Assembly (NCBI GenBank): GCA_002269645.1
Contig: NIVC01002856.1
Span: forward strand, 71,013 to 135,012
DNA from: Macrostomum lignano
Taxonomy: Eukaryota
Reading direction: 5' to 3'
DNA: 64,000 bases
The notes beneath the pieces are model-generated. The model saw nothing but the letters and a program-made list of their open reading frames with translations. It made no database searches and was not told the origin of the DNA. Positions 1 through 62,170 of the stretch are shown here, in pieces (position 1 is the first letter of the stretch; each line of letters starts with the position of its first letter). Position numbers and translations under genes: made by a program.

Positions 1-284
1 TTTGGCAGTAAATCAATGCGTTCACTAAGAACTTCAGGCCGCCAAGCCGGGCGAACTGGAACACTGAAACCGTTCGATTGAAAATGACACCAGTCTGAAT
101 GCTTGATTGATTTGTACCTAATTTTCCTAAAAAGATATTTTGACTCACCAATCATATACTTATCCATAAAGTACATGATAAATGATGGTATCAAGGTCAA
201 ATGATCGGCTATCGTCTCCATGGACAAGAAAAAATTGAGCTTCGAATCGCTTGCGATTAGCTGAACAGAAATTAAACGGAATAA

Positions 285-930
285 TTACACTAAAATAACA
301 GAGAACAAAACCAAACGAAACCAGCAAGTTCTACTTACTCTGCAGACGAACACAAGGCTATAAAACACGTTAATTGCAAAGTCAACATGAATTGCGTTGA
401 ACCGGCTGCTCGAGTGACAGGACTGCAAGCTTTTCGAGAGGCCCGGATTAGCCGATGAGAATGAGTACGTCATAAAAACGTAAACTATGAACGAAACAAC
501 GACGCACATGGAGTACAGTGCGAGCTGAAAGGTGCAGTGTGCGGCTGTTGAATATTTATTTGACAAATTAACTCAAGAATATCACCATTAGGATCGATGT
601 GTGGTGTAACTTGTTATAATGGCTCACCAGTACTTTGCCGGCATTGTTTGCTCCCTTGACAAGCGCCATGCACTCCAGATGGATTCGCGTTTGAAGCGAA
701 GATCTGTGATCTTTGCCAAACAGCTTGCGCCGATTCATGTCTTCAACCTCCTTGTTCCGCTTGGAGCACGTGTCATTAATTAGATGGAAGGCAGCTGCGG
801 TGAGCAGCGCCGCAAAGTACACACCAGCTGCGGAGCCGACAACAATCTGCCACAGGGTGGTACGGCAGTAGGGTGCTGCTGTCGCGGGTCCTGATAGGTT
901 TCCTGTAGACATGCTGAGAAGGACCTCCAA
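285..930 (-). pseudogene. Possible C-terminal (TM5-TM7-like) fragment of a 7TM membrane protein, broken by a 1-nt frameshift near 567
   Basis: ORF 568-930 has a hydrophobic helix (LWQIVVGSAAGVYFAALLTAAAF), a basic loop and HHTSILMVIFLS*. ORF 285-566 continues in the next frame with LALYSMCVVVSFIVYVFMTYSF. Removing one base at 567-570 joins them. No diagnostic GPCR motif seen. Confidence 0.25.
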
Positions 931-3470: not shown

Positions 3471-4710
3471 GCGGTGAATCTGAGTGTTGTCTATGGCAGC
3501 GGGGTGAATCTGGGTGTTGTCTATGGCAGCGGGGTGAATCTGGGTGTTGTCTATGGCAGCGGGGTGAATCTGGGTGTTGTCTATGGCAGCGGGGTGAATC
3601 TGAGTGTTGTCTATGGCAGCGGGGTGAATCTGAGTGTTGTCTATGGCAGCGGGGTGAATCTGAGTGTTGTCTATGGCAGCGGGGTGAATCTGAGTGTTGT
3701 CTATGGCAGCGGGGTGAATTTGAGTGTTGTCTATGGCAGCGGGGTGAATCTGAGTGTTGTCTATGGCAGCGGGGTGAATCTGAGTGTTGTCTATGGCAGC
3801 GGGGTGAATCTGAGTGTTGTCTATGGCAGCGGGGTGAATCTGGGTGTTGTCTATGTGGATCTGGGTGTTGCCTATGGCAGCGGGGTGAATCTGAGTGTTG
3901 TCTATGGCAGCGGGGTGAATCTGGGTGTTGTCTATGGCAGCGGGGTGAATCTGGGTGTTGTCTATGGCAGCGGGGTGAATCTGGGTGTTGTCTATGGCAG
4001 CGGGGTGAATCTGGGTGTTGTCTATGGCAGCGGGGTGAATCTGAGTGTTGTCTATGGCAGCGGGGTGAATCTGAGTGTTGTCTATGGCAGCGGGGTGAAT
4101 CTGAGTGTTGTCTATGGCAGCGGGGTGAATCTGAGTGTTGTCTATGGCAGCGGGGTGAATCTGAGTGTTGTCTATGGCAGCGGGGTGAATCTGAGTGTTG
4201 TCTATGGCAGCGGGGTGAATCTGGGTGTTGTCTATGTGGATCTGGGTGTTGCCTATGGCAGCGGGGTGAATCTGAGTGTTGTCTATGGCAGCGGGGTGAA
4301 TCTGGGTGTTGTCTATGGCAGCGGGGTGAATCTGGGTGTTGTCTATGTGAATCTGGGTGTTGCCTATGGCAGCGGGGTGAATCTAGGTGTTGTCTATGGC
4401 AGCGGGGTGAATCTAGGTGTTGTCTATGGCAGCGTGGTGAATCTGGGTGTTGTCTATGGCAGCGGGGTGAATCTGGGTGTTGTCTATGGCAGCGGGGTGA
4501 ATCTGGGTGTTGTCAATGTCAGCGGGGTGAATCTGGGTGTTGTCTATGGCAGCGGGGTGAATCTGGGTGTTGTCTATGGCAGCGGGGTGAATCTGGGTGT
4601 TGTCTATGGCAGCGGGGTGAATCTAGGTGTTGTCTATGGCAGCGGGGTGAATCTGGGTGTTGTCTATGGCAGCGGGGTGAATCTGAGCGTTGTCTATGGC
4701 AGCAGGTTGA
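3471..4710. repeat. 30-bp minisatellite (GGCAGCGGGGTGAATCTG[A/G]GTGTTGTCTAT), ~41 copies, with a few half-unit (15-bp) variants
   Basis: Direct inspection; 10-aa periodicity in ORF 3426-4721. Confidence 0.97.
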
Positions 4711-5383
4711 ATGCTTACTGAGGCTTTTCGCTAAAAAAACAAAAAACTGATTCTGCAACGACCGATAACAAGAATCTCAAAATAATATGAATTTAATCTA
4801 TTGAATCAGAGCGCATCAGAAAATATAACATCTGGATAATCATGTTTTTCTACGAGTTTTCTACGAGTAGATCGATTTTGGCGAGTTAATCTAAAGATGA
4901 TAGTAAAAGCAGCATTATCTTTCCCGAAGCAATTCTATCGGTTAAACTACGAATCGCATTTGGTTCGAAAAACCCAGTCAGAGTCCAGTATCAAGCAAAA
5001 TTACACAGAAAAAGGAATTGCCATTCAAATATTGCAAAATCAAAATGTGTAAAAATGTTCAAAAAGAAAATCTGAATGATAAACAATTCTAAAGACTAAA
5101 TGGAATGCACGAACGAGGTTAAAGAAAGACATGACGGATACTATTATCTACAAAGCTTAGAATACAAGCGTATCATCCGAAAATGATTAACGGTGCTTTA
5201 ATGGCGTGACAATGGCCGTCGAATATCTCAAGAACCCACCGGTGCGAGCACTCGAGAGGCAGTGCATGAGGGTGGCACCATTGTATCGAGTTGTTCAAAG
5301 TGCGGTAAATTTCTTCTGTTTTCAAAATTTTAAAATTGGATTTCGATGTTGTCAAGGTTGTTGTATGTTGTGTCGATGTTGTA

Positions 5384-5646: not shown

Positions 5647-7303
5647 TTATGAAGTAAGATCCGAATAAACTTTCTTCAATGAGCCTAGAAGAAAATAAAA
5701 CTGTTTTGTCAGCTTGCTGCGCATGTCGGGGACCTGGAAGAGTTTCGAGCCGAACTGGTTCTCCTGCGGATTGCGCGAGATTAGCGCCGTCACTCGGGTG
5801 TGCAGTTGCAGCAGATCCTCCTTGGCTCCATACGCCTCCACCACCCGGCACAGGACGCGAATATATGCCGAGCCGCTTTGCGAATCCCTGTAGGCGATGT
5901 ACTTTTCGCTGGTCGCATAGCCAAAGAAGAAGTCGACACCTTTAGGCGCGAATAAGACGCCACCCGTGTTCGGCTCCTCCGCCTCATCGTCGTCATCGGT
6001 GATCGCTGTGGCGACCTGGTCGGCAGACGCTCCCACGGCCACGGCTCGTGTGGTGGCGAAATTACGTTGCTGACGCTCGCCACGACAGGCCTGTCGGAAC
6101 AATGATTAATTATGGGAATTTGAGTTCTCTAGAAACATGTTTATACACTGGTAAAAGGAATAAAAATGAGGTTATTCGCTTTACCTGAATAAAAAACAGC
6201 TTTGGCTTGCCAGCTAGTCCGGCGCAAACGTCGCTATCGAAGAAAGATGCGATGCGGCCAAGGCTGATGTACTGCCCGTCGGAGCCCACGATCTGGTTGT
6301 TGGTGCCGTGCGACATGAGGAAGCATACGAACGAGTCGTAATTTTCATGATTCTTCAAAGCGATGCGCATGGCAGCCTTGCAGATTCCGGCTGCAGTTGG
6401 GTCAGCTATGCTTCGAACCCGGTATCCAAGTCGCTGCAATAGGCGGCTCACCCGCTCCACATCCACGAGGCTGCCGTTCCGTGTAGGGAATTCGCTGGGA
6501 TTGGCGAATCGCTCGACGTTAATTAGCAGGCAGTAGCCATGCGGACGCTGGCAGTGAGGGTAGATATTTGAGGAAGGCAGGCTGTTGATCGGCTCGAATA
6601 GAGGCTCCGACTGTGGCTGCTGCTGCTGCTGCTTAGCTGCCGTTTGCGCACGCTGCATGACTGGTCCGCCTTCCGAGCTACTCCGATGAAGCTTCTCAGA
6701 TCGGCCTTTCCAGACATCGTCTTTTACTGATTCAAATGCTTCTAAATCTTGCTGTTGCTGCTGTTGCTGCTTGGGCTTTAGCTGCTGAAGCCGAGGAGTT
6801 ACCAGCGGAAACCTGTAAAATAGTAAAGGTAACGGTACATGAGCATCCGACATACCAATCGACAGTGGATGATTGCAAAACGATACTGAGATTCGTCTAG
6901 TTTTACTCGACGACGAATCAACTTTTTTTCAGACAATTGATGAGACAATATCTTTAGAAATCCAAGCTAATAAAGTAAATATTTTATTTTCAGGCGCTCG
7001 CAATTTCACCGCGACGAAAATTAAAAAATGAGAAAGGAAAGCAGGTAATGGATGGCTGGTATATAAGAATTTAAATGCAGTAAAATACCTTAAGGACGGC
7101 TGTTTTTGTTGTTTTTGCTGTTCTTGCTGCTGCTCTTGCTGCTGTTTGCTCTGCTGTTGTTGTTGCTGTAGCTGAAGCTCTTCCACGACCTGCGAGTCCG
7201 AGGTTGTTCTCTGTCGAACTAGCGATGGCTTTCTGCGCTGGCAGCTGGAGTTGCGGCGTTCAAGCAAGGGACGGTTACTCCTGCTGAGGTTTTGGCGGGG
7301 CAT
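5647..7303 (-). CDS. Caspase (caspase-8/10-like catalytic domain) with a Gln-rich N-terminal region; exons 7089-7303 (or from 7280 if fused), 6185-6812, 5647-6090
   Basis: Motifs GYCLLIN, TRNGSLVD, FLMSHG (catalytic His), LAGKPKLFFIQ|ACRG (catalytic Cys across the phase-0 intron 6091-6184) and YIAYRDSQSGSAYI. Both GT-AG introns are phase-compatible. Confidence 0.93.
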
Positions 7304-7380
7304 TTTAATATCATTTATTCGGAGGTCCTACTGTTCATATAGCTTAAAAGATAAATGTGAGAAATTCATGCTATAGCTGC

Positions 7381-10300
7381 TCACTGAAAAAATGGCAGCG
7401 CTAGCAGGTGTTGAACTCCGGGTCGTCGTTTACGCCTGCGCTGCGTGCACAGCCGATAAAGCTCGCCAAGAGCCGCTGAGCTGTCGATCGGCAGGCTCGG
7501 CATTGAGCCAACACAGATGCTGGCGTGCAGACGGTCGAAATTGCGGCTCTGCTCTGCGTTCGGCGGCCGCCCAGAGGCCAACTCAAACACCAGACAGCCG
7601 AAAGCCCACACATCGGATTTGGTAGTGAATTCTGCGCCTGCAGAGTGCAGAACTTCTGGGGCTAGGTAGCACGGCGAGCCCCATTCGCGCGGACGAGCCG
7701 TTCGCTGCTGGCGCATGCATAGCGAGAAGCCGACCAACTTCAGACTGCTGTTCGGCTGTAGCAGAACGCTCTTGCATTTCACGTTGCGATGCACCAAAGC
7801 AGGGCGTTGTTCGTGAAGATATAGCAAAGCTGATGCTATCTGGAATATCAATTTAGTTTAAGTTGTCATGTAAAACGGGATTTTTGGAAGTTAAAAAACC
7901 CAGTAATTCGTGTATTCGTGACGAAAGTCAACGCTTTTAAACTGCTGCTGATAAGTCAGGGTTGGTGAGTGGGTAAGAGCGGAGTAATGAAACACACCGA
8001 AAGTCTAATTAAAACGATTAGTTAACTGACTAGCAATCTAGTGCGGCCCCAATCGGGCGCCCAATAAGCAAGGAGCAAAATAGTTCATAGAAAATAATTT
8101 AAAAATCATTTTTTCTTTAAAACAAATACCTTCTTCACTTTTAAAAATCACCTTATTCATGTAAAATAGTCACGGACAATGATATTTGCTATGAATTCTC
8201 TTTTTTCTAAAATTAATAAATCGACAACAAAATATAGCTTTCACAAAGATAACAGACATTCTCCCTAAATAGAAAATATTCCCAAGACAGCAAGCATCCA
8301 TCCATATAGCAAGCACCCCCTCCAAAAGTAAGCAACCGCAGATAGCAAGCATCCCCTAATACTCGTAGCAAGCATCCACCCAGATAGCAAGCATCACCCC
8401 AGATAGCAAGCATCACCCCAGATAGCAAGCATCCTGCAGATAGCAAGCATGATCCCCCAGATAGAAGCATCCACCCAGATAGAAGCATCCACCCAGATAG
8501 CAAGCATCCACCCAGATAGAAGCATCCACCCAGATAGAAGCATCCACCCAGATAGCAAGCATCCACCCAGATAGCAAGCATCCTGCAGATAGCAAGCATG
8601 ATCCCCCAGATAGAAGCATCCACCCAGATAGCAAGCATCCACCCAGATAGCAAGCACCCCCCCCCAGATATTGTAGAAGCATCCACCCAGATAGCAAGCA
8701 TCCTGCAGATAGCAAGAATCTCTGAATAGCAGGCATCCCTGGATAGAAAAAATACCATACATGTAGCCAGTACCGCCCCTCTCTCAAATAGCAGGTACCC
8801 CCCCCCCCTCGAGAGCAAGCATCCTCCAGATAGCAAGCATCCACCAGACAGCAAGTAGCTAGTGCAAATGTGTTACCTCTGCTAATGCAATAATCGCTTT
8901 CTCAGGTTGTGCAACAATCCACGTCTCAGCTAGCGCAATAATCAGCTTCTAAGCCAGTGAAATAATCATTTTCTCATCTAGTGCAATAATCATTTACTCA
9001 TCAAGTCCAAAAATCAATGTCTCTGCTAGTGCAATAGCCCTTTCTAATCTAGTGCAATAATCCTTGGCTTATCAAGTGCAATAATCCTTGGTTTATCAAG
9101 TGCAGTAATCCTTGGTTTATCAAGTGCAGTAATCCTTGGTTTATCAAGTGCAATAATCCTTGGTTTATCAAGTGCAGTAATCCTTGGTTTATCAAGTGCA
9201 ATAATCTGTCGCTTATCAAGTGCAATAATCCTTGGTTTATCAAGTGCAATAATCCTTGGTTTATCAAGTGCAGTAATCCTTGGTTTATCAAGTGCAATAA
9301 TCCTTGGTTTATCAAGTGCAATAATCCTTGGTTTATCAAGTGCAATAATCCTTGGTTTATCAAGTGCAATAATCCTTGGTTTATCAAGTGCAATAATCTG
9401 TCGCTTATCAAGTGCAATAATCCTTGGTTTATCAAGTGCAGTAATCCTTGGTTTATCAAGTGCAATAATCTGTCGCTTATCAAGTGCAATAATCCTTGGT
9501 TTATCAAGTGCAGTAATCCTTGGTTTATCAAGTGCAATAATTTTTGGCTTATCATTGCATTTCAAGTCGAAAGAGCTGCTTGACCTTTGCATAAAAACAC
9601 GTTTTTTGAATATTTAATCCCTTTAGCATCGAGCAATTTCTTAGTTACGATGCATGTACCGTCCAAGGACTACAGTACTTAACAAGGAGTTGTTAAGTAG
9701 TCCTTGGTACCGTCACGGAAAAATTTCTGATCGAACAGTGCAAGTTCGAAGAAAATCGGTTGAGCCATTTTTGCTAAAATCGATCACACAATACCTACCT
9801 ACCTACCTACCGACAGACCATTTTTAGTATATGGATGATACCTGTCGGCAGTAGGATCGGAGGTCGCCTTCTCTAAATCCGGCCTTTCGCTGAGTCAGAA
9901 TGGAGCGCAGATTGCGGCCTTCAACTAGCTCCGTGAGGACTGTCAGACAGCCGGAGCTGTCGCTCAGCACTTTCACGAGTCGAACAATGCAGTCGTGCCT
10001 CAGTTTGCGAAGAATAAGACAGCTTGCCCGAAACTGTTTCAGCGTCTCCTCTGGACATCCGGGCGTTGTTCTGTACGCAGCGGCCGGCATCCCGTGCAGG
10101 TCAGCGCGGAATACAGAGCCGAACCGGCCGCGGCCCAGCAGGCGTTCTCGATCAATTTGACAGGCCTGCGCATCCTCCTCATCTTGTTCATTTTCGTCCT
10201 CTTCGATTAATTCTTCAAAATCCGTCCCTTCCAGCTCGAAATAATCCTCATCCTCGTCGTCTGTCTTCCGGTACTTGTCCAGACCGCGGGCTCCGGCCTC

Positions 10301-10490
10301 GTCATCATCGTCCAGCTCCTCGGTGGCGTCGCTCTCTCCAAGCCGGCGCTGTTGCAGGAGGACCTCGGGTGCGCTGGCACCTACTTCAGCTCGGCCGCCC
10401 AGGAGGCAGCGATCAGATTTCACCGGTCTGAGGGCTTGCGTCGGCGTCGGAGGCGACGGCGACAGCAGAGGCTTAAGCGACTGCATCGTT
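7381..10490 (-). CDS. Pseudokinase 2 (STE11/MAP3K-like fold) with an acidic N-terminal linker; exons 9842-10490 and 7381/7385-7839
   Basis: LGRGRFGSVF, AAAYR (no VAIK Lys), LRHDCIV, LVHRNVKCKS (HRD to HRN), KLVGFS (no DFG Asp), GSPCYLAPE, KSDVWAFG, RRP..LL..PFF. Phase-0 intron 7840-9841 (CAG|GTATCA...TTCCAG|ATA). Confidence 0.9.
8340..8850. repeat. 18-20-bp degenerate minisatellite (CCCAGATAGCAAGCATCCA) in the pseudokinase-2 intron
   Basis: Direct inspection. Confidence 0.92.
9050..9555. repeat. 24-bp minisatellite (TTATCAAGTGCAATAATCCTTGGT), ~21 copies, in the pseudokinase-2 intron
   Basis: Direct inspection; 8-aa periodicity in the minus-strand ORFs. Confidence 0.96.
9656..9714. other. 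Bulged hairpin (18-bp stem, 5-nt bulge, GGAG loop) flanked by GTACCGTC direct repeats
   Basis: CCAAGGAC-[TACAG]-TACTTAACAA GGAG TTGTTAAGTA-GTCCTTGG; GTACCGTC at 9656-9663 and 9707-9714. Confidence 0.6.
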
Positions 10491-10822
10491 CTGTTTGTTA
10501 CAACAGCGGAAACAAGCATTATTATGGCATTACTTTAACAGGAAATTATTATTCAGTAATTTTTTTAGAAGAGGAAATCCTGATCCTGAAGTGTTTTTTT
10601 TAGACAATCTAATTTATAGCTCATACTTTCTAGCTCATATTTATAGCTCATAGCTCATACTTTCTTAGAATAGAATCGACTTGACATTATCGAACATCGG
10701 CCAAAACATTTTTCAGTTTTTTTTTAACCAAGACCTTGCTTTCCATGTTTTCCATTCTAAACGCCCCTCTCAATTCTGATATTTCTAAGCTTTTATTACC
10801 AGCCTCAGGCAATAGCGAGGAC

Positions 10823-11740
10823 TCACTGGAAAAATTCGAGCTGCAGCAGCTGCTCCATGCGAGGCCGCTGCTGCTCTGCGCACGCTTCGCACAGACTGCG
10901 CAGCTGGTTCGTCGAAGATTCCGGTGCCTCCTTGCAGCCGGTCCTACCGGTGGCCATCTCGACCAGAAAGCAGCCAAACTGACGGACATCCAGCGACGCG
11001 TCAAGTTCGTCCTCTTCAAGGAGGCAGCAGGCGGTGAAGCCGGCCAGCTTAGTATGGCCAGATTCCGTGATCAGTGCGGACCGGCATTTCACATTGCGGT
11101 GCAGAATGCGGCGGCTGTGCAGGTAATGCAAGGCCGATCCGATCTGCGCATCGAAGTGATTCTTACAATGCCTTTTCGGGATCAGAGTACACAGAGGGAA
11201 AGCAGATATCGACAAGAGCTCATCCATCAGTGCTTTTTACCGATAGTGAGACCATGTTTCCGTTTGCGAAGTCAATTTGTTTTTAATTGTTATGTAACAA
11301 TGTAAATTAATCAAATTAAATGACTATGTACGAATAAAACAAACCTGTTTTCCGTGCGCTCCAATCAAGGGTTCTGTCAGACAGCCGCTTCGGTCAATGA
11401 GGTCGCGTAGACTGCCAGCGCCCACCCACTCCATGAGGACGCACACCGAGGCGGCGCTGTCAGCGTCCCTGGCAGCTGCGATGAGGCGCACAATGTTATC
11501 GTGCTTCAACTGCGCTAGGATGCTGAAGCAGCTAAGCAGCTTCCTGCCGGCCTTGTCCGCGCAGTAAACTGCCGCCGTCTCGTCTGCGGTGCTTTCGCTA
11601 GTCTCGGCTGCGCTGATGCGCACTCTGAAGATGCGCCCGAACCGGCCTTGAACTGGAGCGAAGTGCCTTGGGTCGGGCCGGCAGCGAAACCGCCGTCCAT
11701 CAACCGCAAGCAGCTCGAGACTGACGCTTCTCTCTGACAT
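10823..11740 (-). CDS. Pseudokinase 1 (paralogue of pseudokinase 2, activation segment deleted); exons 11345-11740 and 10823/10827-11143
   Basis: QGRFGRIFRV, AAVYC (no Lys), LKHDNIV, LMEWVGAGSL, ILHRNVKCRS, KLAGFT, DVRQFGC. The phase-0 intron 11144-11344 is at the same position (Q|I.SAL.YL) as in pseudokinase 2. Confidence 0.88.
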
Positions 11741-13999: not shown

Positions 14000-16900
14000 T
14001 CACAGGCTGGCTGCCATAGGGTTCATCTGCAGTTGCGGATTCGGCGCCCCGTCAATCTCAGGGATGTCCTTGCGAAACATGTCCTTGATGCGCTGCGGGT
14101 GACCAAACGCAAGTGAGTTGTGAGGTCAATGGGGAGGAAGTCAAATACCATGGACAGAAGCAATTCAAATAGTTTACTGATTTAACTGCCTTACAAGATA
14201 GAAATAATTTATTACTGAGACGAGTTTCTGTTTTGTCTTGACACTTGACTTGTAACAAAGCAATTTAAACACTTTTTTAGTGCTGCAATGCAGCAGCGAA
14301 ATGCGGATGTAACAGATAAGTTTTGCCACTTAGTAGGTAGCAACAAGCAAATTTTTTGAACATTAAAAATATATACCCAAACAGAATGTTCAACATGATG
14401 TGTCTTTGAGAAGTACTTTACGACTTAAAACCAATAGAAAAAGCACAAGCGGACGAGTATCTAGTAACAAGGACTATCGACGACTCCAATTGCAATTGAA
14501 ACATTCTTTATGAAACTTTTAAGGACGAAATCCGAGCAATTACCAATTTATGCAACCTCTCTGAGTGTGCTCAGTCAAGCTCACCTTAGACAGTGGCAGA
14601 TTGTGCTTATTGTCGGTGAAGCAGAGCGTCCGAATGGCATAATAGATGGCGTAGATGGGTATGGCAACCACGGACGACAGGGCCAGCATGGCCCCCAGGG
14701 CTTGGGCCCAGTCCGGGTATTTGTATGGTGGGGCCGTGGACCGCGTATAGATCAGCGGCTTAAACTCCAGCACAGAAAAGGCCAAAACGCCCTGCATGAA
14801 GGTATAGTTCAAGGTCAAATGCAAGGTCAAGTTTAAGAAAGTACTATCATTCGACTTAAACGTAAGGAACCAAATCTTGCACTCACGAAGCAACTCAGAG
14901 GGCACAGGACGGTTACACAAATCTGCCAGATAATGGGCGGCGCATGTCCAATCACCATCTTCATCTTCTCACGGAGGCGGAAAATACCTGAAAAGGTCGT
15001 TTATACATTACTTAACTTAATATAAACATTGTAAATGGGCCTTGTAACTCTTGAGTACACAGACGCGCTCAAATCTGATTTTCAGGTTGTGTACCGGGGG
15101 TTGGCGGCCCCTTGGGCCCTCGGGGGTTGGCCCGTATGATTAAGCGTTGTCTATCTATCAACAGGTCCGGAGGGCAGTGATAAAAGTATAGTAGAACAAT
15201 TTACCGAAGAACCAGGCAAAAGCGATGCACTCGAATCCGATGAGCAGCAGAAGGGCCGGGCCGCTGGCCGCGTAGCTGTCGAACATGTTAAACACGTAGG
15301 CGCCTCCCTGCGGCAGCAGCGGTTGAGGAGTTCGAGGCTGATCTGATGGTTGCAAGTCTCATCAAACTACGTTGAGTAGAGTATTGACACAAAATTCCGT
15401 TCAAATTTCCGCTATTAGCTCCGAGGGTCCAAGATTGCTCAAGATTGATTTGAGCAATACTTAACCTGCTGAGCGACTATCAATAATGTCAACTGGCCTT
15501 TCAAGGATCAGTTACTTCAAGTAACTGCATAAAAGTCATGGAGGGATTCAGAGTTCAAAGGATTAAAAATTCTGAACATCCTTGTGGAAAATTTAACGCT
15601 CTTCTCACCGTGCTGACCATGGACAGGCCGATAACGAAGGAGACCATACAGAGGACGAGCACAAACTTTTTTCTGTGCACACGCAGCAGTGGCCACTCGT
15701 CTGCCACCGCCGTGATGAAGCCTTCGACGGTGCAGAACTACAATTTGTTTAGCATTGCGCCGTTGTTAAATGATCTTGATCTAGAAACATTAACACCTGA
15801 TATAACGGCCGTCACTTGCCTGGCTGTCAATGCCAACAAAGAAGACCATCAGAAAGAACAGGACAGCCCAGATCGGAGCTGCGGGCAGCTCAGAAATAGC
15901 GGACGGATACGCCAGAAAAGCCAAGCCCGGACCTGCGGAGTGATTGGGGAGTGATTGTAGAGTGATTGTGGGGTAATTGCAGAGTGATTGTGGAGTGATT
16001 TTGGAGTGATTTTGGAGTGATTGTGGAGTGATTGTAGAGTGATTGTGGAGTGATTGTAGAGTGATTGTGAAGTAATTGCAGAGTGATTGTGGAGTGATTG
16101 TAGAGTGATTGTGGAGTGACTGTAGAGTGATTGTGGAGTGATTGTAGAGTGATGTGGAGTGATTGCAGAGTGATTGTGAAGTAATTGCAGAGTGATTGTG
16201 GAGTGATTTTAGAGTGATTGTGGAGTAATTTCAGAGTGATTGTGGAGTGATTGTAGAGTGATTGTGGAGTGATTGTAGAGTGATTGTGAAGTAATTGCAG
16301 AGTGATTGTGGAGTGATTGCAGAGTGATTGTGGAGTAATTTCAGAGTGATTGTGGAGTGATTGTAGAGTGATTGTGGAGTGATTGTAGAGTGATTGTGGA
16401 GTGATTTCAGAGTGATTGTGGAGTGATTTTAGAGTGATTGTGGCGTAATTGCAGAGTGATTGTGGAGTGATTGTAGAGTGATTGTGGCGTAATTGCAGAG
16501 TGATTGTGGAGTGATTGTAGAGTGATTGTAGAGTGATTTTGGAGTGATTGCAGAGTGATTGTATGGTGATTGCAAAGTGATTCGAGGGTGATTGGAGAGT
16601 GATGATCATGTTTTAGTGAATTTCCCCTGCAAATGAATGACAGTGTATCATATTGAGAGATTGTTGAGGCATTTCACCCAAAAGTTATGTAGAAACATCG
16701 CACTATGCTACTGTAGTTAAGTAGTTTTTGGCATAACACCAGCGAGTTATTTAAACAAGCTACTCATCTGCGAACATCTGTTTTGTTATATTTCCACTAC
16801 AAAACTGCATATGATTATGAAAAATTGGAACAAAAGAAAAATTGCAAAAGTGCTGCATTCTAGAGCCGACTAGCTGGCGGCAGCTTCTACGCCTGGAGAA

Positions 16901-19900
16901 GCGCCTACGATTTTCTATTCCATCTCCTCAACTGCATTTATTTTTAAGCTCAATGGTTTGAAGAGCTTATTGGCAGTTTATTTACTCACCTTGCTGCATT
17001 GGGCTTTTATTTTAGAGCTGAATTCCTGATTGAAAATCTGCATTTTTACCCTCGTCAAAAGCCTCACCTGACGCGGCCACCTGGCTAACACTCTTCTTCT
17101 GCGCTTTGGCCATGAATCCGATTACTGAGAAGATGACAAAACCGGCAAAGATGCTGGTACACGAGTTGATGGTGCCAACCAAAAGTGCATCTCTGCAGTG
17201 GAGCGATAGAGGGATTTTTTGGAATCGTTTTTTTACAATTCCATATGGCTTTTTCATTGCTGAAACGGAGAACTCTTCCCCAGGCCTCAGGTTGGGGCGC
17301 AATGAAGCGAGTAACGGTGAGCCCTTACTGACGGGATGAGACACCTGGCATAGCTGATATGGCTAGTTGACACTGAGGCTCGGGAGCTAACAGAATAAAC
17401 TGGGAACTGAATCCCTTCAGCTGTCTAAGCTATAGAGAACCTTTGCCTTGCGCTGAGGCTCCGTGAGTTATGACGCCTCTTCGTGGCTTCACGCGCGGAG
17501 AGACGAGGGTGGGGGTTAGAGCGGGACAGTGGAGCTATATTCAAAGAGAATACGCGATTACCTGACACTATACCCTGAAGCTACATATGTAAAGCACCTG
17601 ATGGAAAAAATACAAAAAAGTAGAACGAGAGACACAGAGACAAATGAGCCAGCTCATCACCCCTTTGCGGAAGACAGTTTGTGGTTGCAGTTGATAAAAA
17701 GCATTGACGGAATAAGCAAATAGCGTAGACCCTGGCTGCATGCAACGAAAAACGGAGCCTTGCCAGGCACTCACTTGTAGCAGTTGTTGGTTAGCGGGTT
17801 GTAACTGCCAAGAGCTATGTGCGTGCCGAGGCCTAGGCCCAGGGAAAAGAATATCTGAGAGGCGGCCTGGAGCCACACCTGCGAGTGGGAATGCAAACTC
17901 AAGTTCAGCTTCATTCGATTTGATTAACTGTTGTTGACATAACTGACTTAAAATTTAACATTGCTGGAATTATTATTGGTTAAAAATTAAAGTCCACCTT
18001 TGACTCCTGAATTTTGGTGAAGTTCGGCTTCAGGTAGTACTCGATGCCAATGCTCGCTCCGTCCAGTGTGATGCCGCGGAACAGCAGGATGATGAGCAGC
18101 ATGTACGGGAACAGAGCTGTGACGTACACTATCTGCAATCAGTTCCAAGCGGATTCTGACAGCTGTTGGACGTGGATTCCACAAGATTGCACAGCCCAAG
18201 TCATTATTAGGAATTTCAAATTCTCAATCCAAAAGCTATTAACCAGTATATCTTCCAGAAAAGCATTCAACTATTTTCTTTTTTCCCGCAGCAAAGCGCT
18301 CACACAACTAGCAAGCTCAACCAAATTAACAACCTTTCCGGTCCACTGAACGCCCTTGAAGATGCAGAAGTAGCAGACGATCCAAGCGATGCCCAGCGTC
18401 AGCACCAGCTGCCAGCGCAGCCCTCCGGCCTCTCCAATGTCGGTGGACATGCTCAGCGCTTGGCGTCTGGAGAGGTTGAAATTAATAAAATGGCTCAATA
18501 CTTCTGGACCCGTTCAGGCATGGGCCCATGCCTCCATCCGCCTGAGTAGCCCACAGTGCGCAGGCATCACACAAAACAGATTGAAAAAGCAACTCACTCC
18601 CAAAATTCGGCCACCGGCGAGTTCCAGCTGTCCTTGCCGCACAGCTGGCACTGCTCCATCTCGCTGGTTGTCCCAATCACGGAGATTGGGCCCCAGCTGT
18701 CATTGTAGCCGGATGGGATCAGGGTGGTCGGCAGCAGACCGCGGGTGAAATTCGTGGCGGAGTAGGAGATGTTGACCATGGTGCAGTTGAAGCCCGTATT
18801 GTTGGCGAAAGTGGACATGCAGCAGTGCGTATTCCAGCTTTCGTTGCACTTCTTCCAGGGCAATTCGCCCATGGTGAAACTGTTGCCAAGATAATAAAGC
18901 GCGTAGGCCACAATGACAATATAATACACGTTGAGCCAGAAAGCCATTATATTGGCGCAGAAGCCGACACCTGAAATCAAAGTTCAAAGAGCGCTGTGTG
19001 AAAAGGCCCGATTACATGAATTGACCTTTAGCTTGCGTCGATTCTGTCTGGACCGACAGTGGGCGCCTTGCAAGCATTCGCAGGCAGCAAGTCATGAATT
19101 TTGTTATTGCCAAATCGGATGGAAATCCACGATTCAAGGAACCGAGGCTGACTGGGGCTGCAAAAATTCAATTGAAAAAGCAAAACTCTCCTGACCCTCT
19201 TCGGCAGTTGTCGCAATTGTGTTTCCTGTCGGAGACAGAGCGAGTGCACGCGAAATTTGAAAGCCATTCCACTCTGTCAGAGACAATTAATTAACCCGAA
19301 TGGCTTTTTCTGAAAAAGGCAATCTCTCAAGGCTCCCTTCATCTCGTCTCTATCGCTCTGTTGCAACCCAGCTGTCGCTTCCACTGTGGCTCAGACGGGA
19401 TGCCTGCCTTCCAATTCCACGAGTTGTCCCATCCAGAAGCTAGCAGGCGGAGGAAAGCGAAGATGACAGATTCCTCATCTCAGTTGGACCGGCGCCCCGA
19501 CCCCGCAGAGACCGGTGGTGTGTAAGCAAACATTGCCAGGGGAAGATTGCATGGCTGATTGTGCCGGCTTACACTGAAAATGCCCGCGAGCGCAGAGCAG
19601 ACAGCCAAATAAAACAATGTTTAACGACGGTCGCACCGCGGCCTGCCGATGGTTTTTCTTACCCTTGAAGATTGGGCAGTACTTCCACACTCCGAGGCCA
19701 CCAACGTTCAGCATCTGGCCGAGGCTCAGCTCCAGCATCAGCATGGGGATTCCGCCGAAGAAGAGCGTGATCAGATAGGGGATCAGAAAGGTGCCTGGTT
19801 TGGCCGAAGATGGTTTGGAAGAATAAAAATAGGCATTCGCAAGTGTAAACTGCTTATGGCAAATGTCAAAGGTATCCGGTGGATCACTGACCCTAATTAC

Positions 19901-20496
19901 CGCAAAATTTTTAACTTTTTAACTAAAAAACCAAATAAGGCTACATTTGCAGTTTTTAAAGAGTAGACTGTGTGCTGACTATTGTAAAAGACCGTGGACT
20001 CCCAGATCCTCATAGAGGAGGGGCGCATCTGATCAGCCCTATCCTGACCTCCATGAGACCCTCCGCTCGCATTCAAAGTCAAATTCGAATTCCTCCGATG
20101 TTCTACGCACAGTAGTTCTACTGCCTCAGCTCTTTCTCTGTTGTCTCAGCATCCCAAAAAGTGCTCAGGCATTGAGACCCCTCCCCAAAAGCTCACCGCC
20201 GCCATTCTCATAGCAGAGGTAGGGAAAGCGCCACACGTTGCCCAATCCGATGCAGAGTCCAATGCAGCTCAGAATGAAGTCTAACTTGCTGCTCCATTTC
20301 TCTCTAACAGTGACCGGCCCTGACGCCTGAAAGAGCGAATAAAGAAAGCTCGCAGTTAGTTCAGAATATGTGCAGAAGCATCTGTGTTTAACAACCCAGC
20401 GACCTTGGCTGCTTCCGCTGTAGCTTCCTCGCCGTCTCGCAGAGGCACCTTCGCTTCGGCGACGGCGTCCTCGGCCTCCTTGCCATCGGGGTCCAT
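14000..20496 (-). CDS. SLC6 Na/Cl-dependent neurotransmitter transporter, GABA transporter (GAT)-like, 14 coding exons, 656 aa
   Basis: Exons 20404-20496, 20197-20326, 19663-19794, 18598-18970, 18334-18466, 17998-18132, 17775-17878, 17068-17192, 15820-15932, 15609-15737, 15205-15307, 14887-14987, 14585-14791, 14000-14092 sum to 1971 nt in frame. Motifs [62 protein letters not shown]. Confidence 0.95.
15936..16610. repeat. 11-bp minisatellite (GAGTGATTGT[G/A]) in an SLC6 intron, abutting the splice acceptor at 15933-15934
   Basis: Direct inspection. Confidence 0.96.
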
Positions 20497-22794: not shown

Positions 22795-23890
22795 GTACTC
22801 TCAAGTACTCACTAGTACTCACTAGTACTCACTAGTGGTCACTAGTACTCCCAAGTACTCACTAGTACTCACTAGTACTCACTAGTGGTCACTAGTACTC
22901 CCAAGTACTCACTAGTACTCACTAGTACTCACTAGTGGTCACTAGTACTCCCAAGTACTCACTAGTACTCACTAGTACTCACTAGTGGTCACTAGTACTC
23001 CCAAGTACTCACTAGTACCCACAAGTACTCAGGAGTACTCACTAGTACTCACTAGTACTCACTAGTACTCACTAGTAGTCACTAGTACTCACTAGTACTC
23101 CCAAGTACTCACTAGTACTCACTAGTGCTCACTAGTACTCCCAAGTACTGACTAGTACCCACTAGTACTCAGGAGTACTCACTAGTACTCACTAGTACTC
23201 ACTAGTGCTCACTAGTACTCACTAGTACTCACTAGTACTCCCAAGTACTCACTAGTACTCACTAGTGCTCACTAGTACTCCCAAGTACTGACTAGTACCC
23301 ACTAGTACTCAGGAGTACTCACTAGTACTCACTAGTACTCACTAGTGCTCACTAGTACTCACTAGTACTCCCAAGTACTCACTAGTACTTACTAGTGCTC
23401 ACTAGTACTCCCAAGTACTGACTAGTACCCACTAGTACTCAGTTGTACTCACTAGTACTCCCTAGTACTCACTAGTAGTCACTAGTGCTCACTAGTACTC
23501 CCAAGTACTCACTAGTACCCACTAGTACTCACTAGTACTCCCAAGTACTCACTAGTACTCAATAGTGCTCAGGAGTACTCCCAAGTACTCACTAGTACTC
23601 ATTAGTGCTCAATAGTACTGACTAGTACTGACTAGTACTGACTAGTACCCACTAGTACTCAGTAGTACTCACTAGTACTCAGTAGTACTCACTAGTACTC
23701 AGTAGTACTCACTAGTACTCACTAGTAATCATTAGTGCTCACTAGTACTCCCAAGTACTCACTAGTACCCACTAGTACTCAGTAGTACTCACTAGTACTC
23801 AGTAGTACTCACTAGTACCCACTAGTACTCCCTAGTGCTCAGTAGTACTCACTAGTACTCACTAGTAATCACTAGTGCTCACTAGTGCTC
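22795..23890. repeat. 10-bp minisatellite (ACTAGTACTC and variants), ~110 copies
   Basis: Direct inspection; built from overlapping palindromes ACTAGT and AGTACT. Confidence 0.97.
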
Positions 23891-25684
23891 CCTAGGCCGT
23901 ATTAATGACTCAGGTCGCAGGACTCAGCAATTGAAATCTGTTCTCCCAGATTTGACAGCCATTGAAGACAATGCTCACTATTTTAATCCCTGTCGAGCCG
24001 CTGAGTCTGGCTAAGCTCAAGCATAAAATCTAGACACAATAGCACAAAACACCAGCACGGGTTTTCGCATGCTTGACAATTATTCGTTCCAAAAATAGTC
24101 AAACATTAGACAGTCTCATCCAGGGTATCCAGGCTGACTTGCTCGCAGATGCAGCTCTCACAATTCCACGCTTGACTGCGCCCAATCTTACCAAATTGAA
24201 TTACCTGCAGTCCCTTCCACTACCCGGACGAAATGAAACAATCGTATATACACTGTACGAGCGTACCTGGATTTTGGGAAGGAAAGCTGTACACGTATAA
24301 AAAATGTCTTTTTTGACCTCAGCCCATGCATGGGGGGGGGGTAAATTAAATGCAAACGCTGGGTGATGACACGGGGCGACAACCGACAGTCCTCAGAAAG
24401 CAGATGCAGCAACAGCAACAGAGAGCGCGCACACACACACCTGTCTCATACCTGTTCAACAGGAATCCAATTCTATGCAGTCCTGTGGCTCCAGCCCGTC
24501 AGTCAGCCACACGGGAGCCGCACCGCTTCCCGGCCCTAAATTCTTCAATCAAGCGAGCCCCCGGAGTAAATTAGGCAGCTCAAGCCGGGCGCGGGAGGCG
24601 GCCAGCCATGCGCACTAAAGAGAATGGGGCAGAGGAGCGGCAAGGAAAGGTGTATTAAAATGATTAATTGAGTGAAAAACTGGACCGGCCCTCGAACTGT
24701 GTCGCGTGACTGACTGCAATACGAACTCGGGCAATGATGAAGCGACCCGGAGCGCTGTGAGTCGGTTGGGGGGGGGATGAGAAATGAAATTGAAAGCGGA
24801 GAGACCGGCGCTGGTGATTATTAAGTCTCGCTATTCGCTTTGAAGCAGTGTTGCCATGCGGAGCGCGAGTTCGCACCAGCTTAGCAGTGCCGGCAGGAAA
24901 CAAATTGACTGCTGCTGAGCATTCAGCCAGTCTAGATCGGGCATTATCTCACTATGCTCCAGTCGAACTCAGCGGATCCCAGCTGAATGACGCACGCTTT
25001 TGACAGAACTGGGAAAATTACGAGAGAGAGAGAGAGAGTTCGTGACCTGGGCCTGTCAGAACATTTCATAGCTGAGAAACTTGAAATGCGCTGTTGAATA
25101 CATTTCTAATGTTTTTAACGAATTTACTATTGTACTACTGATTTACTGAGTAGTTTAGGATATGAGCAGGCTTACTTTTTTAGTTGGTAAATACCTACAG
25201 AAAGCCGTCTTCGATCTGATGCTCTCTGATCATGAGTTTCTGACCATTTTGATTTTCTCATCCTCATTAATCTTGTACAGATCAACAGGAATTTAGAATC
25301 AAACGCGAAACACTGGCTCCTGCCATTAACAATACCTACAACTTTTAATTAAAGGGCATAATCTGCTTGCAAAGTACACTTGTTACTTGTTTACTTTAAC
25401 TGTTGAATTAAAAGTTTTGCATTTGAGCAGATAACTACTGATAATTACTTTAGTTGCTTTAAACTTGCCCAAATATTCTCTCTCGGCCACTCATTACAGG
25501 CCGGAATTCAGTGGTATTTTAATCTAAACCATACTTTCTAAGAAGTTTAAAATAAGCGCGTACACTAACTGGAACAGAATGTACATAGGCACAGGGGTGG
25601 ACAGAAAGGGGAGGGGCTGACTGTACGCTCAACTGGCCAATGTACGCACTAGGTCAAGTACGGGACTGAAGCGAGCGTTGCCTT

Positions 25685-27433: not shown

Positions 27434-29352
27434 ATGATGCTTTTTCCACACCATCTCCGATAAGATGCCTTTTCCACACCATCTCCGATAAGATGCTTTT
27501 TCCAAACCATCTCCGATAAGATGCCTTTTCCACACCATCTCCGATAAGATGCCTTTTCCACACCATCTCTGATAAGATGCCTTTTCCACACCATCTCCGA
27601 TAAGATGCCTTTTCCACACCATCTCCGATAAGATGCCTTTCTACACCATCTCCGATAAGATGCCTTTCTACACTATCTCCGATAAGATGCCTTTTCCACA
27701 CCATCTCCGATAAGATGCCTTTCTACACCATCTTCGATAAGATGCCTTTCTACACCATCTCCGATAAGATGCCTTTCTACACCATCTCCGATAAGATGCC
27801 TTTCTACACTATCTCCGATAAGATGCCTTTTCCACACCATCTCCGATAAGATGCCTTTTCCACACCATCTCTGATAAGATGCCTTTTCCACACCATCTCC
27901 GATAAGATGCCTTTCTACACTATCTCCGATAAGATGCCTTTTCCACACCATCTCCGATAAGATGCCTTTTCCACACCATCTCCGATAAGATGCCTTTCTA
28001 CACCATCTCCGATAAGATGCCTTTCTACACTATCTCTGATAAGATGCCTTTTCCGCACCATCTCTGATAAGATGCCTTTTCCACACCATCTCTGATAAGA
28101 AGCCTTTTCCACACCATCTCCGATAAGATGCCTTTCTACACTATCTCCGATAAGATGCCTTTTCCACACCATCTCCGATAAGATGCCTTTTCCACACCAT
28201 CTCCGATAAGATGCCTTTCTACACCATCTCCGATAAGATGCCTTTCTACACTATCTCCGATAAGATGCCTTTTCCGCACCATCTCTGATAAGATGCCTTT
28301 TCCACACCATCTCTGATAAGAAGCCTTTTCCACACCATCTCCGATAAGATGCCTTTCTACACTATCTCCGATAAGATGCCTTTTCCACACCATCTCCGAT
28401 AAGATGCCTTTTCCACACCATCGTTTTTCCACTTACGTTTTCGGAGATGGCTACACCATCTCCGATAAGATGCCTTTCTACACCATCTCCGATAAGATGC
28501 CTTTCTACACCATCTCCGATAAGATGCCTTTCTACACTATCTCCGATAAGATGCCTTTTCCACACCATCTCCGATAAGATGCCTTTTCCACACCATCTCT
28601 GATAAGATGCCTTTTCCACACCATCTCCGATAAGATGCCTTTCTACACTATCTCCGATAAGATGCCTTTTCCACACCATCTCCGATAAGATGCCTTTTCC
28701 ACACCATCTCCGATAAGATGCCTTTCTACACCATCTCCGATAAGATGCCTTTCTACACTATCTCCGATAAGATGCCTTTTCCGCACCATCTCTGATAAGA
28801 TGCCTTTTCCACACCATCTCTGATAAGAAGCCTTTTCCACACCATCTCCGATAAGATGCCTTTCTACACTATCTCCGATAAGATGCCTTTTCCACACCAT
28901 CTCCGATAAGATGCCTTTTCCACACCATCTCCGATAAGATGCCTTTCTACACCATCTCCGATAAGATGCCTTTCTACACTATCTCCGATAAGATGCCTTT
29001 TCCGCACCATCTCTGATAAGATGCCTTTTCCACACCATCTCTGATAAGAAGCCTTTTCCACACCATCTCCGATAAGATGCCTTTCTACACCATCTCCGAT
29101 AAGATGCCTTTCTACACTATCTCCGATAAGATGCCTTTTCCACACCAACTCTGATAAGATGCCTTTTCCACACCATCTCTGATAAGATGCCTTTCTACAC
29201 CATCTCCGATAAGATGCCTTTTCCACACCATCTCTGATAAGATGCCTTTTCCACACCATCTCTGATAAGATGCCTTTTCTACACCATCTCTGATAAGATG
29301 CCTTTTCTACACTATCTTCGATAAGATGCCTTTTCCACACCATCTCCGGTAA
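27434..29352. repeat. 27/28-bp minisatellite (CACACCATCTCCGATAAGATGCCTTT[T]C), ~69 copies, with a 221-bp higher-order unit
   Basis: The AAGAAGCC variant marker occurs at ~28101, 28322, 28829 and 29050 (spacings 221, 507, 221). Confidence 0.97.
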
Positions 29353-30599
29353 GATGATATTAGATATAATAATTTATAATATTTATGATATAATAAATAT
29401 TTTTCAAACGAATAACTACTACTTTAAACAAATATAATTTTGTAAAATTATTCCGCTTAAAATATACGATCGTATACTCAGTCACTTAGGTGGTATTTTC
29501 TTTCAGCGCAAAATGATCATGAGGCTTCTTTGTTGGAGTGAACTCTTTAGCCCTTTGAAGAGTGCGTGTGCACCAAAGATGAAGAAAAGGAAAGGATTGC
29601 CAAGGGCTATGTAATGTAGGGATATACCTACCTTCCTGCAGTCTTACTGGAACTAATTTTGTAGATGTGAACTTTAGGTGCCGCTTCTTGGGATTATCTG
29701 CGAAATGTCTTACACTGTTTGAGCTGAGTTGCAAAAACTACAGTTTGCATTAGTGGTATTTCCCTGAAAGTACTGGTGCCTGGAAAATCAGCCGTGACCG
29801 GAGAGAGCCATGATAGCAGCCGGGATGTCTCTTTGCGAAAGGCTTATTAGAAGCTTCCGGAGCTGATTAGAGGGTTGAGGGACAGCGCCTTTGGACTGCC
29901 TGCCGGTAGAAAATTTCGCCCAGATTGAGAGATGTTGGGTCTTGATCTACGGCCCAACGGAGGATCCAGTGGCGCCCTTTGATTACCACGCGCCCGGGCA
30001 CTCATTTAAGGGTGATTTAGTCTGTGAATCCCTGTTGAATTGTAAATAAAAAAGATGTACCGGCCAATGACGCTAGTGACGAGAAACTCCTGCGGCGCAG
30101 GAGCTGATGGCAAGGACTACGACTGTATCGGCTCTACTATGACGTTTTCTCGACATACGATTGAAAATGTCTTTCGGTCGTTAGACTCCGTGATTTTGTG
30201 CCGAATATGTATTTCTAATTTCGTGACATTCGAGTCTAAATTTAGCGTGATGATGATTATGAATTTCTTCAACCTGGAAATTCCAGAAGAGCAGAGGTGC
30301 ATTTTTTGTCTCGCCAGGTGTGCACAAGAGGAGGTGTATAAATTCAAAGCGACAGTTAATTCTGCAAATAGCTGTGGATAGCCTAAAAATAGCCCCATGA
30401 TGTCTTGGCAGCAATGCCAAAGTACGCACAAACGATAGAATATTTATATACTGTCTTCTCTTCTGTCCGTCTGTCTCATTTTACAAGGAAACGCCATGGA
30501 CTAACGGGGGATTTGCAAGCCTAGCTCAATATATTATAATTGATGTCTTCATTGCTCCCGGAGTCTCCTATTAGATTCAGCCTTAACTCGCACGCCGAT

Positions 30600-61699: not shown

Positions 61700-62170
61700 C
61701 CAGCTGTGAGCTGGAGTCATTAGTGAGTAGCAGGTGTGAGCTGGAGTGATTAGTGAGTGGCAGGTGTGAGCTGGAGTCATTAGTGAGTAGCAGGTGTGAG
61801 CTGGAGTGATTAGTGAGTAGCAGGTGTGAGCTGGAGTGATTAGTGAGTAGCAGGTGTGAGCTGGAGTGATAGTGAGTGGCAGGTGTGAGCTGGAGTGATT
61901 AGTGAGTGGCAGGTGTGAGCTGGAGTGATTAGTGAATGGCAGGTTTCAGCTGGAGTGATTAGTGAGTAGCAGGTGTGAGCTGGAGTGATTAGTGAATGGC
62001 AGGTGTGAGCTGGAGTGATTACTGAGTGGCAGGTGTGAGCTGGAGTGAATTACTGAGTGGCAGGTGTGAGCTGGAGTGATTACTGAGTGGCAGGTGTGAG
62101 CTGGAGTGATTAGTGAATGGCAGGTGTCAGCTGGAGTGATTAAGTGAGTGCAGGTGTGAGCTGGAGTGAC
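61700..62170. repeat. 30-bp minisatellite (GTGAGCTGGAGTGATTAGTGAGTAGCAGGT), ~15 copies
   Basis: Direct inspection. Confidence 0.95.

Follow-up and report, generated by a model that had tools for sequence, protein, structure and literature searches.

A Macrostomum lignano gene predicted to encode a caspase with a tandem-pseudokinase prodomain and two in-frame TGA codons within splice donors

The stretch of DNA discussed here (referred to as the window; 64,000 nucleotides) is part of contig NIVC01002856.1 of Macrostomum lignano, assembly GCA_002269645.1. On its minus strand, at window 11740..5647, lies the gene BOX15_Mlig031106g1, which spans 6094 nt in seven exons and encodes PAA54824.1, a protein of 1027 amino acids (aa) deposited as a hypothetical protein. 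In a protein search, PAA54824.1 was a 100% identical, full-coverage match to the protein encoded in the window. We consider it probable, at roughly 75%, that this is one M. lignano gene for a 1027-residue procaspase with an N-terminal prodomain of two pseudokinases in tandem (PK1 and PK2), and that the two TGA codons lying in frame in the genomic sequence are spliced out as parts of phase-2 donors. One gene in the order PK1-PK2-caspase is what an earlier reading of the DNA letters (the original prediction) had proposed, and that order equals the transcript-derived coding sequence (CDS) both here and at a second genomic copy, which encodes PAA75167.1.

All features of the gene are read from the minus strand. 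Exon 1 (11345..11740) begins with the ATG at 11740 and encodes the N-lobe of PK1, with a degenerate G-loop (VQGRFG, 11647-11627); it ends at a phase-0 donor, CAG/gtttgt. Exon 2 (10827..11143) encodes the C-lobe of PK1, in which HRNVKCRS (11101-11078) is followed by AGFT in place of DFG (11044-11033), and ends with EFF and the two nucleotides CA. Intron 2 (10491..10826; 336 nt, phase 2) precedes exon 3 (9842..10490), which covers a proline-rich and then acidic linker (residues 239-345) and the N-lobe of PK2 (GRGRFGS, 10135-10115). Intron 3 (7840..9841; 2002 nt, phase 0) interrupts PK2 at the same Q/I.SAL.YLH position as intron 1 does PK1. This intron carries two tandem-repeat arrays, one of 19 nt in ~23 copies (8285-8720) and the other of 24 nt in ~21 copies (9047-9554), which cause long spurious open reading frames (ORFs). 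Exon 4 (7385..7839) encodes the C-lobe of PK2, with HRNVKCKS (7791-7768), VGFS for DFG (7734-7723) and a retained APE, and ends with PFF and CA. Following intron 4 (7284..7384; 101 nt, phase 2), exon 5 (7089..7283) encodes a linker that is basic and then polyQ (polyQ, 7168-7100) and has no Pfam domain. Exon 6 (6185..6812) continues with a Q-rich linker and the large-subunit region of the caspase, including SHG with the catalytic histidine (6313-6305), and ends with the Q of QACRG; that pentapeptide is thus interrupted by intron 6 between Q and A (window 6085-6187). Exon 7 (5647..6090) encodes ACRG (Cys codon 6087-6085) and the intersubunit linker, which contains both ASAD/Q (6030-6016), aligned with IETD/S of caspase-3, and a DDDD run (6000-5983). 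It also covers the small-subunit region and includes the TAA stop (5649-5647).

A Pfam scan of the full protein returned two Pkinase domains and one Peptidase_C14 domain. The same scan gave no match to CARD, DED or Death at E 0.01, in agreement with the original prediction, in which no DED/CARD prodomain was visible. It also gave no match to the ankyrin family in PAA54824.1, and no Pfam domain in the linkers, where a scan at E 1 was likewise without a CARD, DED or Death match. The N-terminal extension ahead of the catalytic domain is ~745 residues long.

The two TGA codons come at corresponding places. The ORF at 10823..11227 ends in LEFFQ-TGA and the ORF at 7381..7851 in LPFFQ-TGA, the shared F-F-Q-stop ending that had been reported. 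On the minus strand the first TGA (10825-10823) lies in the donor CA/GTGAGT (exon end 10827) and the second (7383-7381) in CA/GTGAGC (exon end 7385), and both donors are phase 2, as had been proposed. Because an unspliced phase-2 intron with a GTGAG donor always reads xxG-TGA, the in-frame TGAs are an automatic result of such donors and no coincidence that needs explaining. That both are the GTGAG cores of ordinary splice donors, removed from the mRNA, is supported. In M. lignano no donor motif is more enriched than GT[G/A]AG, which occurs in 122,399 of 187,627 regions (Ustyantsev and Berezikov 2021, PMC8629364). Within this gene, only introns 2 and 4 have donors in full agreement with this consensus. 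The common F-F-Q ending reflects the shared descent of PK1 and PK2. The lesson is that an ORF-based reading of intron-rich genomes will routinely meet "stops" at phase-2 GTGAG donors.

The expected phase-2-compatible acceptors at 10491 and at 7284/7281 are present as well. The first is AACAG/AACGATG (exon start 10490) and the second CTCAG/CAG/GAGT (exon start 7283 or 7280). The latter is a tandem NAGNAG acceptor (CAG/CAG; window 7281-7286, minus strand) whose upstream site adds 3 nt and places His-Arg where the downstream site gives Gln; both sites may be used. The seven exons listed by the original prediction take the acceptor at 7280, and on recomputation they give 3081 nt and 1026 aa in one open frame whose only stop is terminal. 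If exon 5 starts at 7283 instead, the CDS of the window measures 3084 nt and agrees residue for residue with PAA54824.1. This is the sole difference between the two models: the tandem acceptor had been recognized, but GenBank starts exon 5 at the upstream CAG (7283), giving PFF-HR-SNRP at the PK2-caspase junction (junction 2) instead of PFF-Q-SNRP.

The gene set to which the model belongs, Mlig_3_7, combines STAR/StringTie/TACO assemblies of RNA-seq data with a de novo transcriptome and is not ab initio. Its ORFs were called with TransDecoder, and the TBONE pipeline cut transcriptional units wherever reads supported trans-splicing (spliced leader, SL) or polyadenylation (Wudarski et al. 2017, PMC5730564). 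Since Mlig_3_7 was built from transcripts, a CDS that has no introns 2 and 4 should derive from spliced transcripts. Intron 2 is absent from PAA54824.1, from PAA75167.1 and from P0055 and P0177, two independent older models from an earlier assembly that also contain the PK1-PK2 junction (junction 1, EFFQ-TMQS). Intron 4 is absent from PAA54824.1 and PAA75167.1, both of which use the acceptor at 7283. Moreover, the deposited unit is not divided by TBONE between the kinase and caspase domains. P0055 and P0177 break off in intron 3, and the corresponding caspase models are headless fragments.

The M. lignano genome is partly duplicated, and a second, syntenic copy of the locus (L002) is found on contig NIVC01000899.1. 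It has the same architecture, splice sites, junctions and neighbour genes as the locus in the window. In the alignment of the two copies, the gaps within the seven exons (3084 nt) amount to a 9-nt in-frame indel in the polyQ region and one column at the stop, while the introns between them hold 517 gap columns, 484 of these in intron 3, whose repeat arrays are not equally long in the two copies. The ratio of nonsynonymous to synonymous differences per site (pN/pS) is 0.10 for PK2, 0.09 for the caspase and 0.47 for PK1, values that come from small counts, 38 substitutions in all. A sequence taken at first for an 87% "paralogue" (P0057) is merely a mis-spliced model of this second copy.

An AATAAA follows each TGA, 26 nt past it for PK1 (10797-10792) and 62 nt past it for PK2. 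Near junction 2 the original prediction had pointed to this hexamer as leaving room for separate genes; it is there, though at 7319-7314 and not at 7313-7318, and it is non-specific. AATAAA is present in intron 5 too, and we rejected its occurrence after each TGA as evidence of termination. The same observations bear on whether the gene undergoes regulated alternative processing, which would extend the one-gene interpretation. Retention of intron 2 or 4, or intronic polyadenylation, would then yield PK1-only (238 aa) or PK1-PK2 (606 aa) proteins serving as decoys or regulators. Such a scheme is consistent with the stop directly after the last kinase codon at both donors, with AATAAA next (10797, 7319), with kinase domains that end exactly at the ends of exons 2 and 4, and with the older models P0055 and P0177, which stop inside the locus. 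However, the TGA comes automatically with this type of donor, and AATAAA, as in intron 5, is expected by chance in AT-rich introns. The deposited gene was left whole by TBONE, which cuts at experimental poly(A) sites, and P0055 and P0177 look like fragments (with intron 3 read-through or without a start Met), not isoforms. We therefore regard alternative processing as a tentative addition to the one-gene model, worth keeping in mind and not favoured.

Residues of the two kinase domains were called from alignments to WNK3, BRAF, MAP3K2, JAK and active kinases from the search. In PK1, the β3 Lys is replaced by Tyr, the αC Glu by Cys, HRD by HRN, the catalytic-loop Asn by Ser and DFG by GFT. The replacements in PK2 are Ala for the β3 Lys, Ser for the αC Glu, HRN for HRD, Ser for the catalytic-loop Asn and GFS for DFG. 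With five of five catalytic residues lost in each domain, the assignment of PK1 and PK2 as pseudokinases, already made in the original prediction, is confirmed as far as sequence can tell. Pfam Pkinase matches PK2 with 132 bits (profile positions 3-263) and PK1 with 76.8 bits (positions 10-152), and PK1 additionally has neither an activation segment with APE nor an αG region. The two are 30% identical (E 7e-26), have the hexapeptide HRNVKC in common, carry an intron at the same Q/I.SAL.YLH position and are sisters in a crude neighbour-joining tree. PK1 and PK2 are dead duplicates and each other's closest relatives. Exons 3 and 4 add up to 1104 nt, which divides into complete codons, and a phase-2 intron bounds them on either side; an in-frame internal duplication would leave such a pattern.

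Modelled alone by AlphaFold2 (AF2) with a kinase alignment, PK1 gives a compact kinase fold with a mean predicted local distance difference test score (pLDDT) of 81.9 and a predicted template modelling score (pTM) of 0.81. Foldseek compares this model with Aurora A, MST2 and PLK at template modelling (TM) scores of 0.72-0.79, with no particular resemblance to MLKL, RIPK or further known pseudokinases.

In the C-terminal part, Peptidase_C14 (PF00656) scores 170 bits against a cut-off of 21.4 and is matched over profile positions 2-233 of 233, a span that takes in both the p20 and the p10 region. The last 280 residues can be aligned with caspase-3 (PDB, E 2.7e-34), CED-3 and caspase-6. SHG (His839) and QACRG (Cys882) are retained, and the arginines of RNG and AYRD align with caspase-3 Arg64 and Arg207 of the Asp-binding S1 pocket. 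The Asp of ASAD/Q occupies the position of IETD175/S in caspase-3, and the DDDD run follows it. In the AF2 model the caspase region reaches a pLDDT >90, with Foldseek TM scores of 0.85-0.92 to caspase-7 and caspase-3. Judged by these residues and by the model, the caspase-3/7-like catalytic domain appears intact and looks active. Outside Macrostomum, a sponge and schistosomes supply the nearest sequences, caspase-3-like proteins at ~33-36% identity that have no kinase domain; nor was one seen in any of the 120 of 149 matches listed in the search with the caspase domain.

A search of protein databases for the combination of two kinases and a caspase had been suggested by the original prediction. 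The full protein was compared exhaustively by HMMER with 1.84 billion representative proteins, and the best 150 matches were scanned for domains, with Pfam assignment and source checked. Among these 150, kinase and caspase occur on one protein only in M. lignano, where at least three other architectures combine them. Unrelated organisms (oomycete, bird, plant, chytrid) supplied the long multi-kinase proteins that head the HMMER list; those proteins score high only through their many kinase domains and were set aside. A word-indexed search with the full-length protein gave just the self cluster and generic kinases and missed the M. lignano relatives found by HMMER. These relatives include PAA89054.1 (kinase, Cys-less pseudo-caspase, ankyrin, caspase), PAA47029.1 and two further copies (ankyrin, kinase, caspase), PAA70070.1 and PAA94590.1 (kinase, caspase-like), the UniRef entry A0A1I8GSE8 (kinases, pseudo-caspase, ankyrin) and the tandem-kinase proteins P0179, P0181 and P0189. 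The pairing of a Cys-less pseudo-caspase with an intact caspase on one chain recalls FLIP and caspase-8 fused to each other. It is one of several kinase-caspase architectures with ankyrin repeats, represented by the related loci L003 (NIVC01000166.1) and L004 (NIVC01004603.1) and by proteins P0197, P0185, P0209 and P0204; the Ank domain was found in P0197, P0209 and P0204. At L003 two kinase-caspase genes are arranged head to head.

The relatives group with PK1 and PK2 in the crude neighbour-joining tree, and P0197 and P0209 have a kinase intron at the same Q/I.SAL.YLH position. They retain the β3 Lys, DFG and APE, and except in PAA89054.1 (HRQ) the Asp of HRD as well; from these residues, most of the kinase-caspase relatives may be active kinases. 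A conserved "shuffling" intron right after the kinase domain was considered and rejected, as its position and phase vary and it is absent in P0181. P0181 (PAA71750.1, locus L005) carries ankyrin and two kinases with intact HRDIKCSN and DFG, and is the closest kinase relative of PK2 (34% identity). One of its exons (aa 717-1031) spans the end of the kinase-1 C-lobe, the linker and the start of kinase 2, and the tandem kinases of this M. lignano family are hence independent of splice prediction. Scored against the caspase described here, the caspase domains of the relatives reach ~38-78 bits, as compared with ~140 bits for ordinary caspase-3-like proteins. Since the relatives' caspases are less alike than these ordinary proteins, the fusion may have had a single origin or repeated ones.

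Several points weigh against the one-gene, tandem-pseudokinase procaspase. The removal of introns 2 and 4 is indicated indirectly, by the transcript-derived CDS deposited for two loci. Junction 2, which the original prediction had named as the weaker one, is backed by the Mlig_3_7 annotation alone, a single pipeline, though at two loci, whereas junction 1 is also in P0055 and P0177. The two genomic copies are 97-99% identical and have little power to reveal constraint on splice sites or linkers, and we found no orthologue outside M. lignano with which to test deep conservation of the architecture. In-frame ATGs occur 4 nt past the first acceptor and 20 nt ahead of the second; with these and the AATAAA after each TGA, separate or truncated products are physically possible. 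At 101 nt, intron 4 has nearly the length that typically separates cistrons in M. lignano operons (PMC8629364). In the full-length AF2 model the kinase regions have pLDDT <50, and the model is poor outside the caspase. Disorder was rejected as the cause, since PK1 alone modelled well, and the low values are attributed to a shallow, caspase-dominated alignment. Finally, that a pseudokinase scaffold drives activation of the caspase is something we purely infer, by analogy with other systems.

Some of these points would fit a PK1-PK2 gene followed by a separate caspase gene, expressed from an SL operon or from its own start at the in-frame ATG that had been predicted at 7303 and is present (7303-7301), with junction 2 as a rare read-through or chimera. 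Besides the single source of junction 2 and the AATAAA at 7319 ahead of that ATG, the length of intron 4 is near the ~100-nt mode of operon spacers. Moreover, ~15% of M. lignano genes belong to operons, and ~7% of transcripts in the assembly are polycistronic precursors (PMC5730564, PMC8629364). On the other hand, the deposited CDS is spliced from 7385 to 7283 and is not an unspliced precursor, likewise at the second locus, and an SL site would have led TBONE to split the unit. Neither the first acceptor (AAACAG) nor the second (CCTCAG/CAGCAG) fits the SL acceptor motif [T/C]TNCAG, a comparison to be read with the motif itself present at just 9551 of 21754 M. lignano SL sites (PMC8629364). In addition, the AATAAA is just ~30 nt ahead of the acceptor, and kinase and caspase are also joined in at least three other M. 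lignano gene families. A separate caspase gene is, in our judgment, unlikely.

These objections also apply to three independent genes for PK1, PK2 and the caspase, in which the TGAs would be true stops and the fusion an annotation artefact. Each segment can in principle be read as an ORF with an ATG (11740, 10486 and 7303) and a stop, then AATAAA. Nevertheless, junction 1 occurs in four deposited models from two assemblies, both TGAs are in perfect CAG/GTGAG donors, exons 3 and 4 form whole codons flanked by phase-2 introns, and P0181 encodes its tandem kinases in a continuous exon. We consider three genes highly improbable, and a single gene for a tandem-pseudokinase procaspase remains our preferred interpretation.

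The catalytic domain of the protein finds its best matches in sequence and structure among the executioner caspases-3 and -7 (C14A), with SHG, QACRG, the S1 arginines and the aligned Asp of IETD175. Executioner caspases, in contrast, have a prodomain of ~20-30 residues, against ~745 here, and their zymogen is a constitutive dimer activated by cleavage of the linker; a short prodomain is thus not a feature of this protein. The long N-terminal region is shared with the initiator caspases (caspase-2, -8 and -9, CED-3 and Dronc) and could serve recruitment and proximity-induced activation. Initiator caspases, however, carry a CARD or DED prodomain, while here a pseudokinase pair without a death fold would be the interaction module. 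The ANK caspases of parasitic flatworms likewise have a long N-terminal region, but theirs bears ankyrin repeats, which were not detected here. The other M. lignano kinase-caspases (PAA89054.1, PAA47029.1, PAA70070.1 and PAA94590.1) resemble this protein in the N-terminal kinase and an intron just after the kinase domain, and differ from it in ankyrin repeats, sometimes a Cys-less pseudo-caspase, and mostly kept kinase residues.

With respect to the kinase part, JAK (JH2-JH1) and the plant tandem kinases (WTK1/Yr15 and Rpg1) also have two kinase folds per chain, at least one of them dead, with roles in binding or allostery. They differ in that here both kinases are dead and are fused to a protease output, and no homology beyond the kinase fold was seen, the kinases closest to PK1 and PK2 in the comparisons with known kinases being generic STE/TKL/WNK types. 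The likeness to plant tandem kinase immune receptors is an analogy only, sharing just the tandem arrangement. Kinases or pseudokinases act together with a caspase in cell-death decisions in the case of RIPK1, RIPK3 and MLKL with caspase-8 (ripoptosome, necrosome). Those, however, are separate proteins brought together through DD, DED and RHIM, none of which was detected here, and there is no specific similarity to RIPK or MLKL.

Caspases are normally recruited via death-fold domains. Induced proximity is what activates caspases with long prodomains, while pseudokinases work as scaffolds or as allosteric partners; it is from these two properties that a scaffold role is suggested. The pseudokinase pair would serve as an interaction or oligomerization scaffold in place of the CARD or DED of initiator caspases and would bring caspase domains together, leading to proximity-induced activation. 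The protease might then cleave itself at an Asp in the intersubunit linker (ASAD/Q or the DDDD run), and the low-complexity linkers, one acidic and the other basic/polyQ, would act as flexible tethers. In a bolder version, to which we give little credence, the tandem dead kinases would form a sensor or decoy built into the protein. The pair would be bound or modified by a ligand, by an effector from a pathogen or by an active kinase of the family, and this would release or oligomerize the caspase. The protein would then be a single-chain, death-fold-independent switch for cell death or immunity in an animal, and intron retention could supply pseudokinase-only antagonists. If functional, a caspase with a pseudokinase-pair prodomain would represent a different coupling of sensing to proteolytic cell death. 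M. lignano is amenable to transgenesis and RNAi, which makes the function directly testable.

The gene structure does not count as a discovery. GenBank has carried the model since 2017, and the class of architecture was reported in 2024, when Horkan et al. (Genome Biol Evol 16:evae204; PMC11463336) described, in one sentence, an M. lignano caspase with a kinase-like pro-domain. The view expressed in the original prediction that no such caspase architecture was known consequently does not stand. According to that paper, which used the GenBank PAA protein set, the kinase-prodomain caspase is sister to the ANK caspases, the annelid Eisenia andrei likewise has a caspase with a kinase domain, ANK caspases are missing from free-living flatworms, and kinase-caspase models could be chimeric predictions. 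The caspase in question shares with ours the species and a kinase-type domain N-terminal to the caspase, without CARD or DED. The paper makes no mention of two kinases, dead sites, gene structure or a family. The gene may or may not be that of PAA54824.1, M. lignano having at least four kinase-caspase gene families. The caspase domain of P0209, used as a query to place the gene of Horkan et al., gave four weak and uninformative matches. Beyond what PMC11463336 covers, the present analysis adds the two kinase domains, both dead duplicates, the intact protease, the gene structure and a family of kinase/caspase/ankyrin proteins. Within this family, a pseudo-caspase and a caspase on a single chain are a further detail absent from that paper. 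The ankyrin-bearing kinase-caspases of M. lignano fit poorly with the lack of ANK caspases in free-living flatworms as stated there. Our searches of the literature yielded no other work on M. lignano caspases of the kinase type, and the gene IDs Mlig031106 and Mlig010610 were not found in the searchable literature.

The gene is flanked by a sodium:neurotransmitter symporter family (SNF) gene upstream (~14000-20496, minus strand) and a Slo/BK potassium channel gene downstream (1-912, minus strand). The latter runs off the start of the window, and the gene order is the same at the second genomic copy. Between the caspase gene and the BK gene lies a 30-nt minisatellite of ~42 copies (3473-4712), which gives rise to a spurious 431-aa ORF of GSGVNL(S/G)VVY repeats. 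Farther away, an intronless ORF of 726 aa (47781-49961, minus strand) has a sub-threshold zf-AD-like match at its N-terminus only and may be transposon-derived or a domesticated gene. On the plus strand, an ORF of 366 aa with a GAF domain (39590-40690) has the look of an initial coding exon belonging to a gene of the cyclic-nucleotide phosphodiesterase type. Further micro- and minisatellite arrays, with units of 10-30 nt and up to 110 copies, are found at 15938-16603, 22795-23895, 27436-29356, 60084-60540 and 61701-62169. The satellite arrays of the window are consistent with the reported 15% content of simple and tandem repeats in the M. lignano genome.

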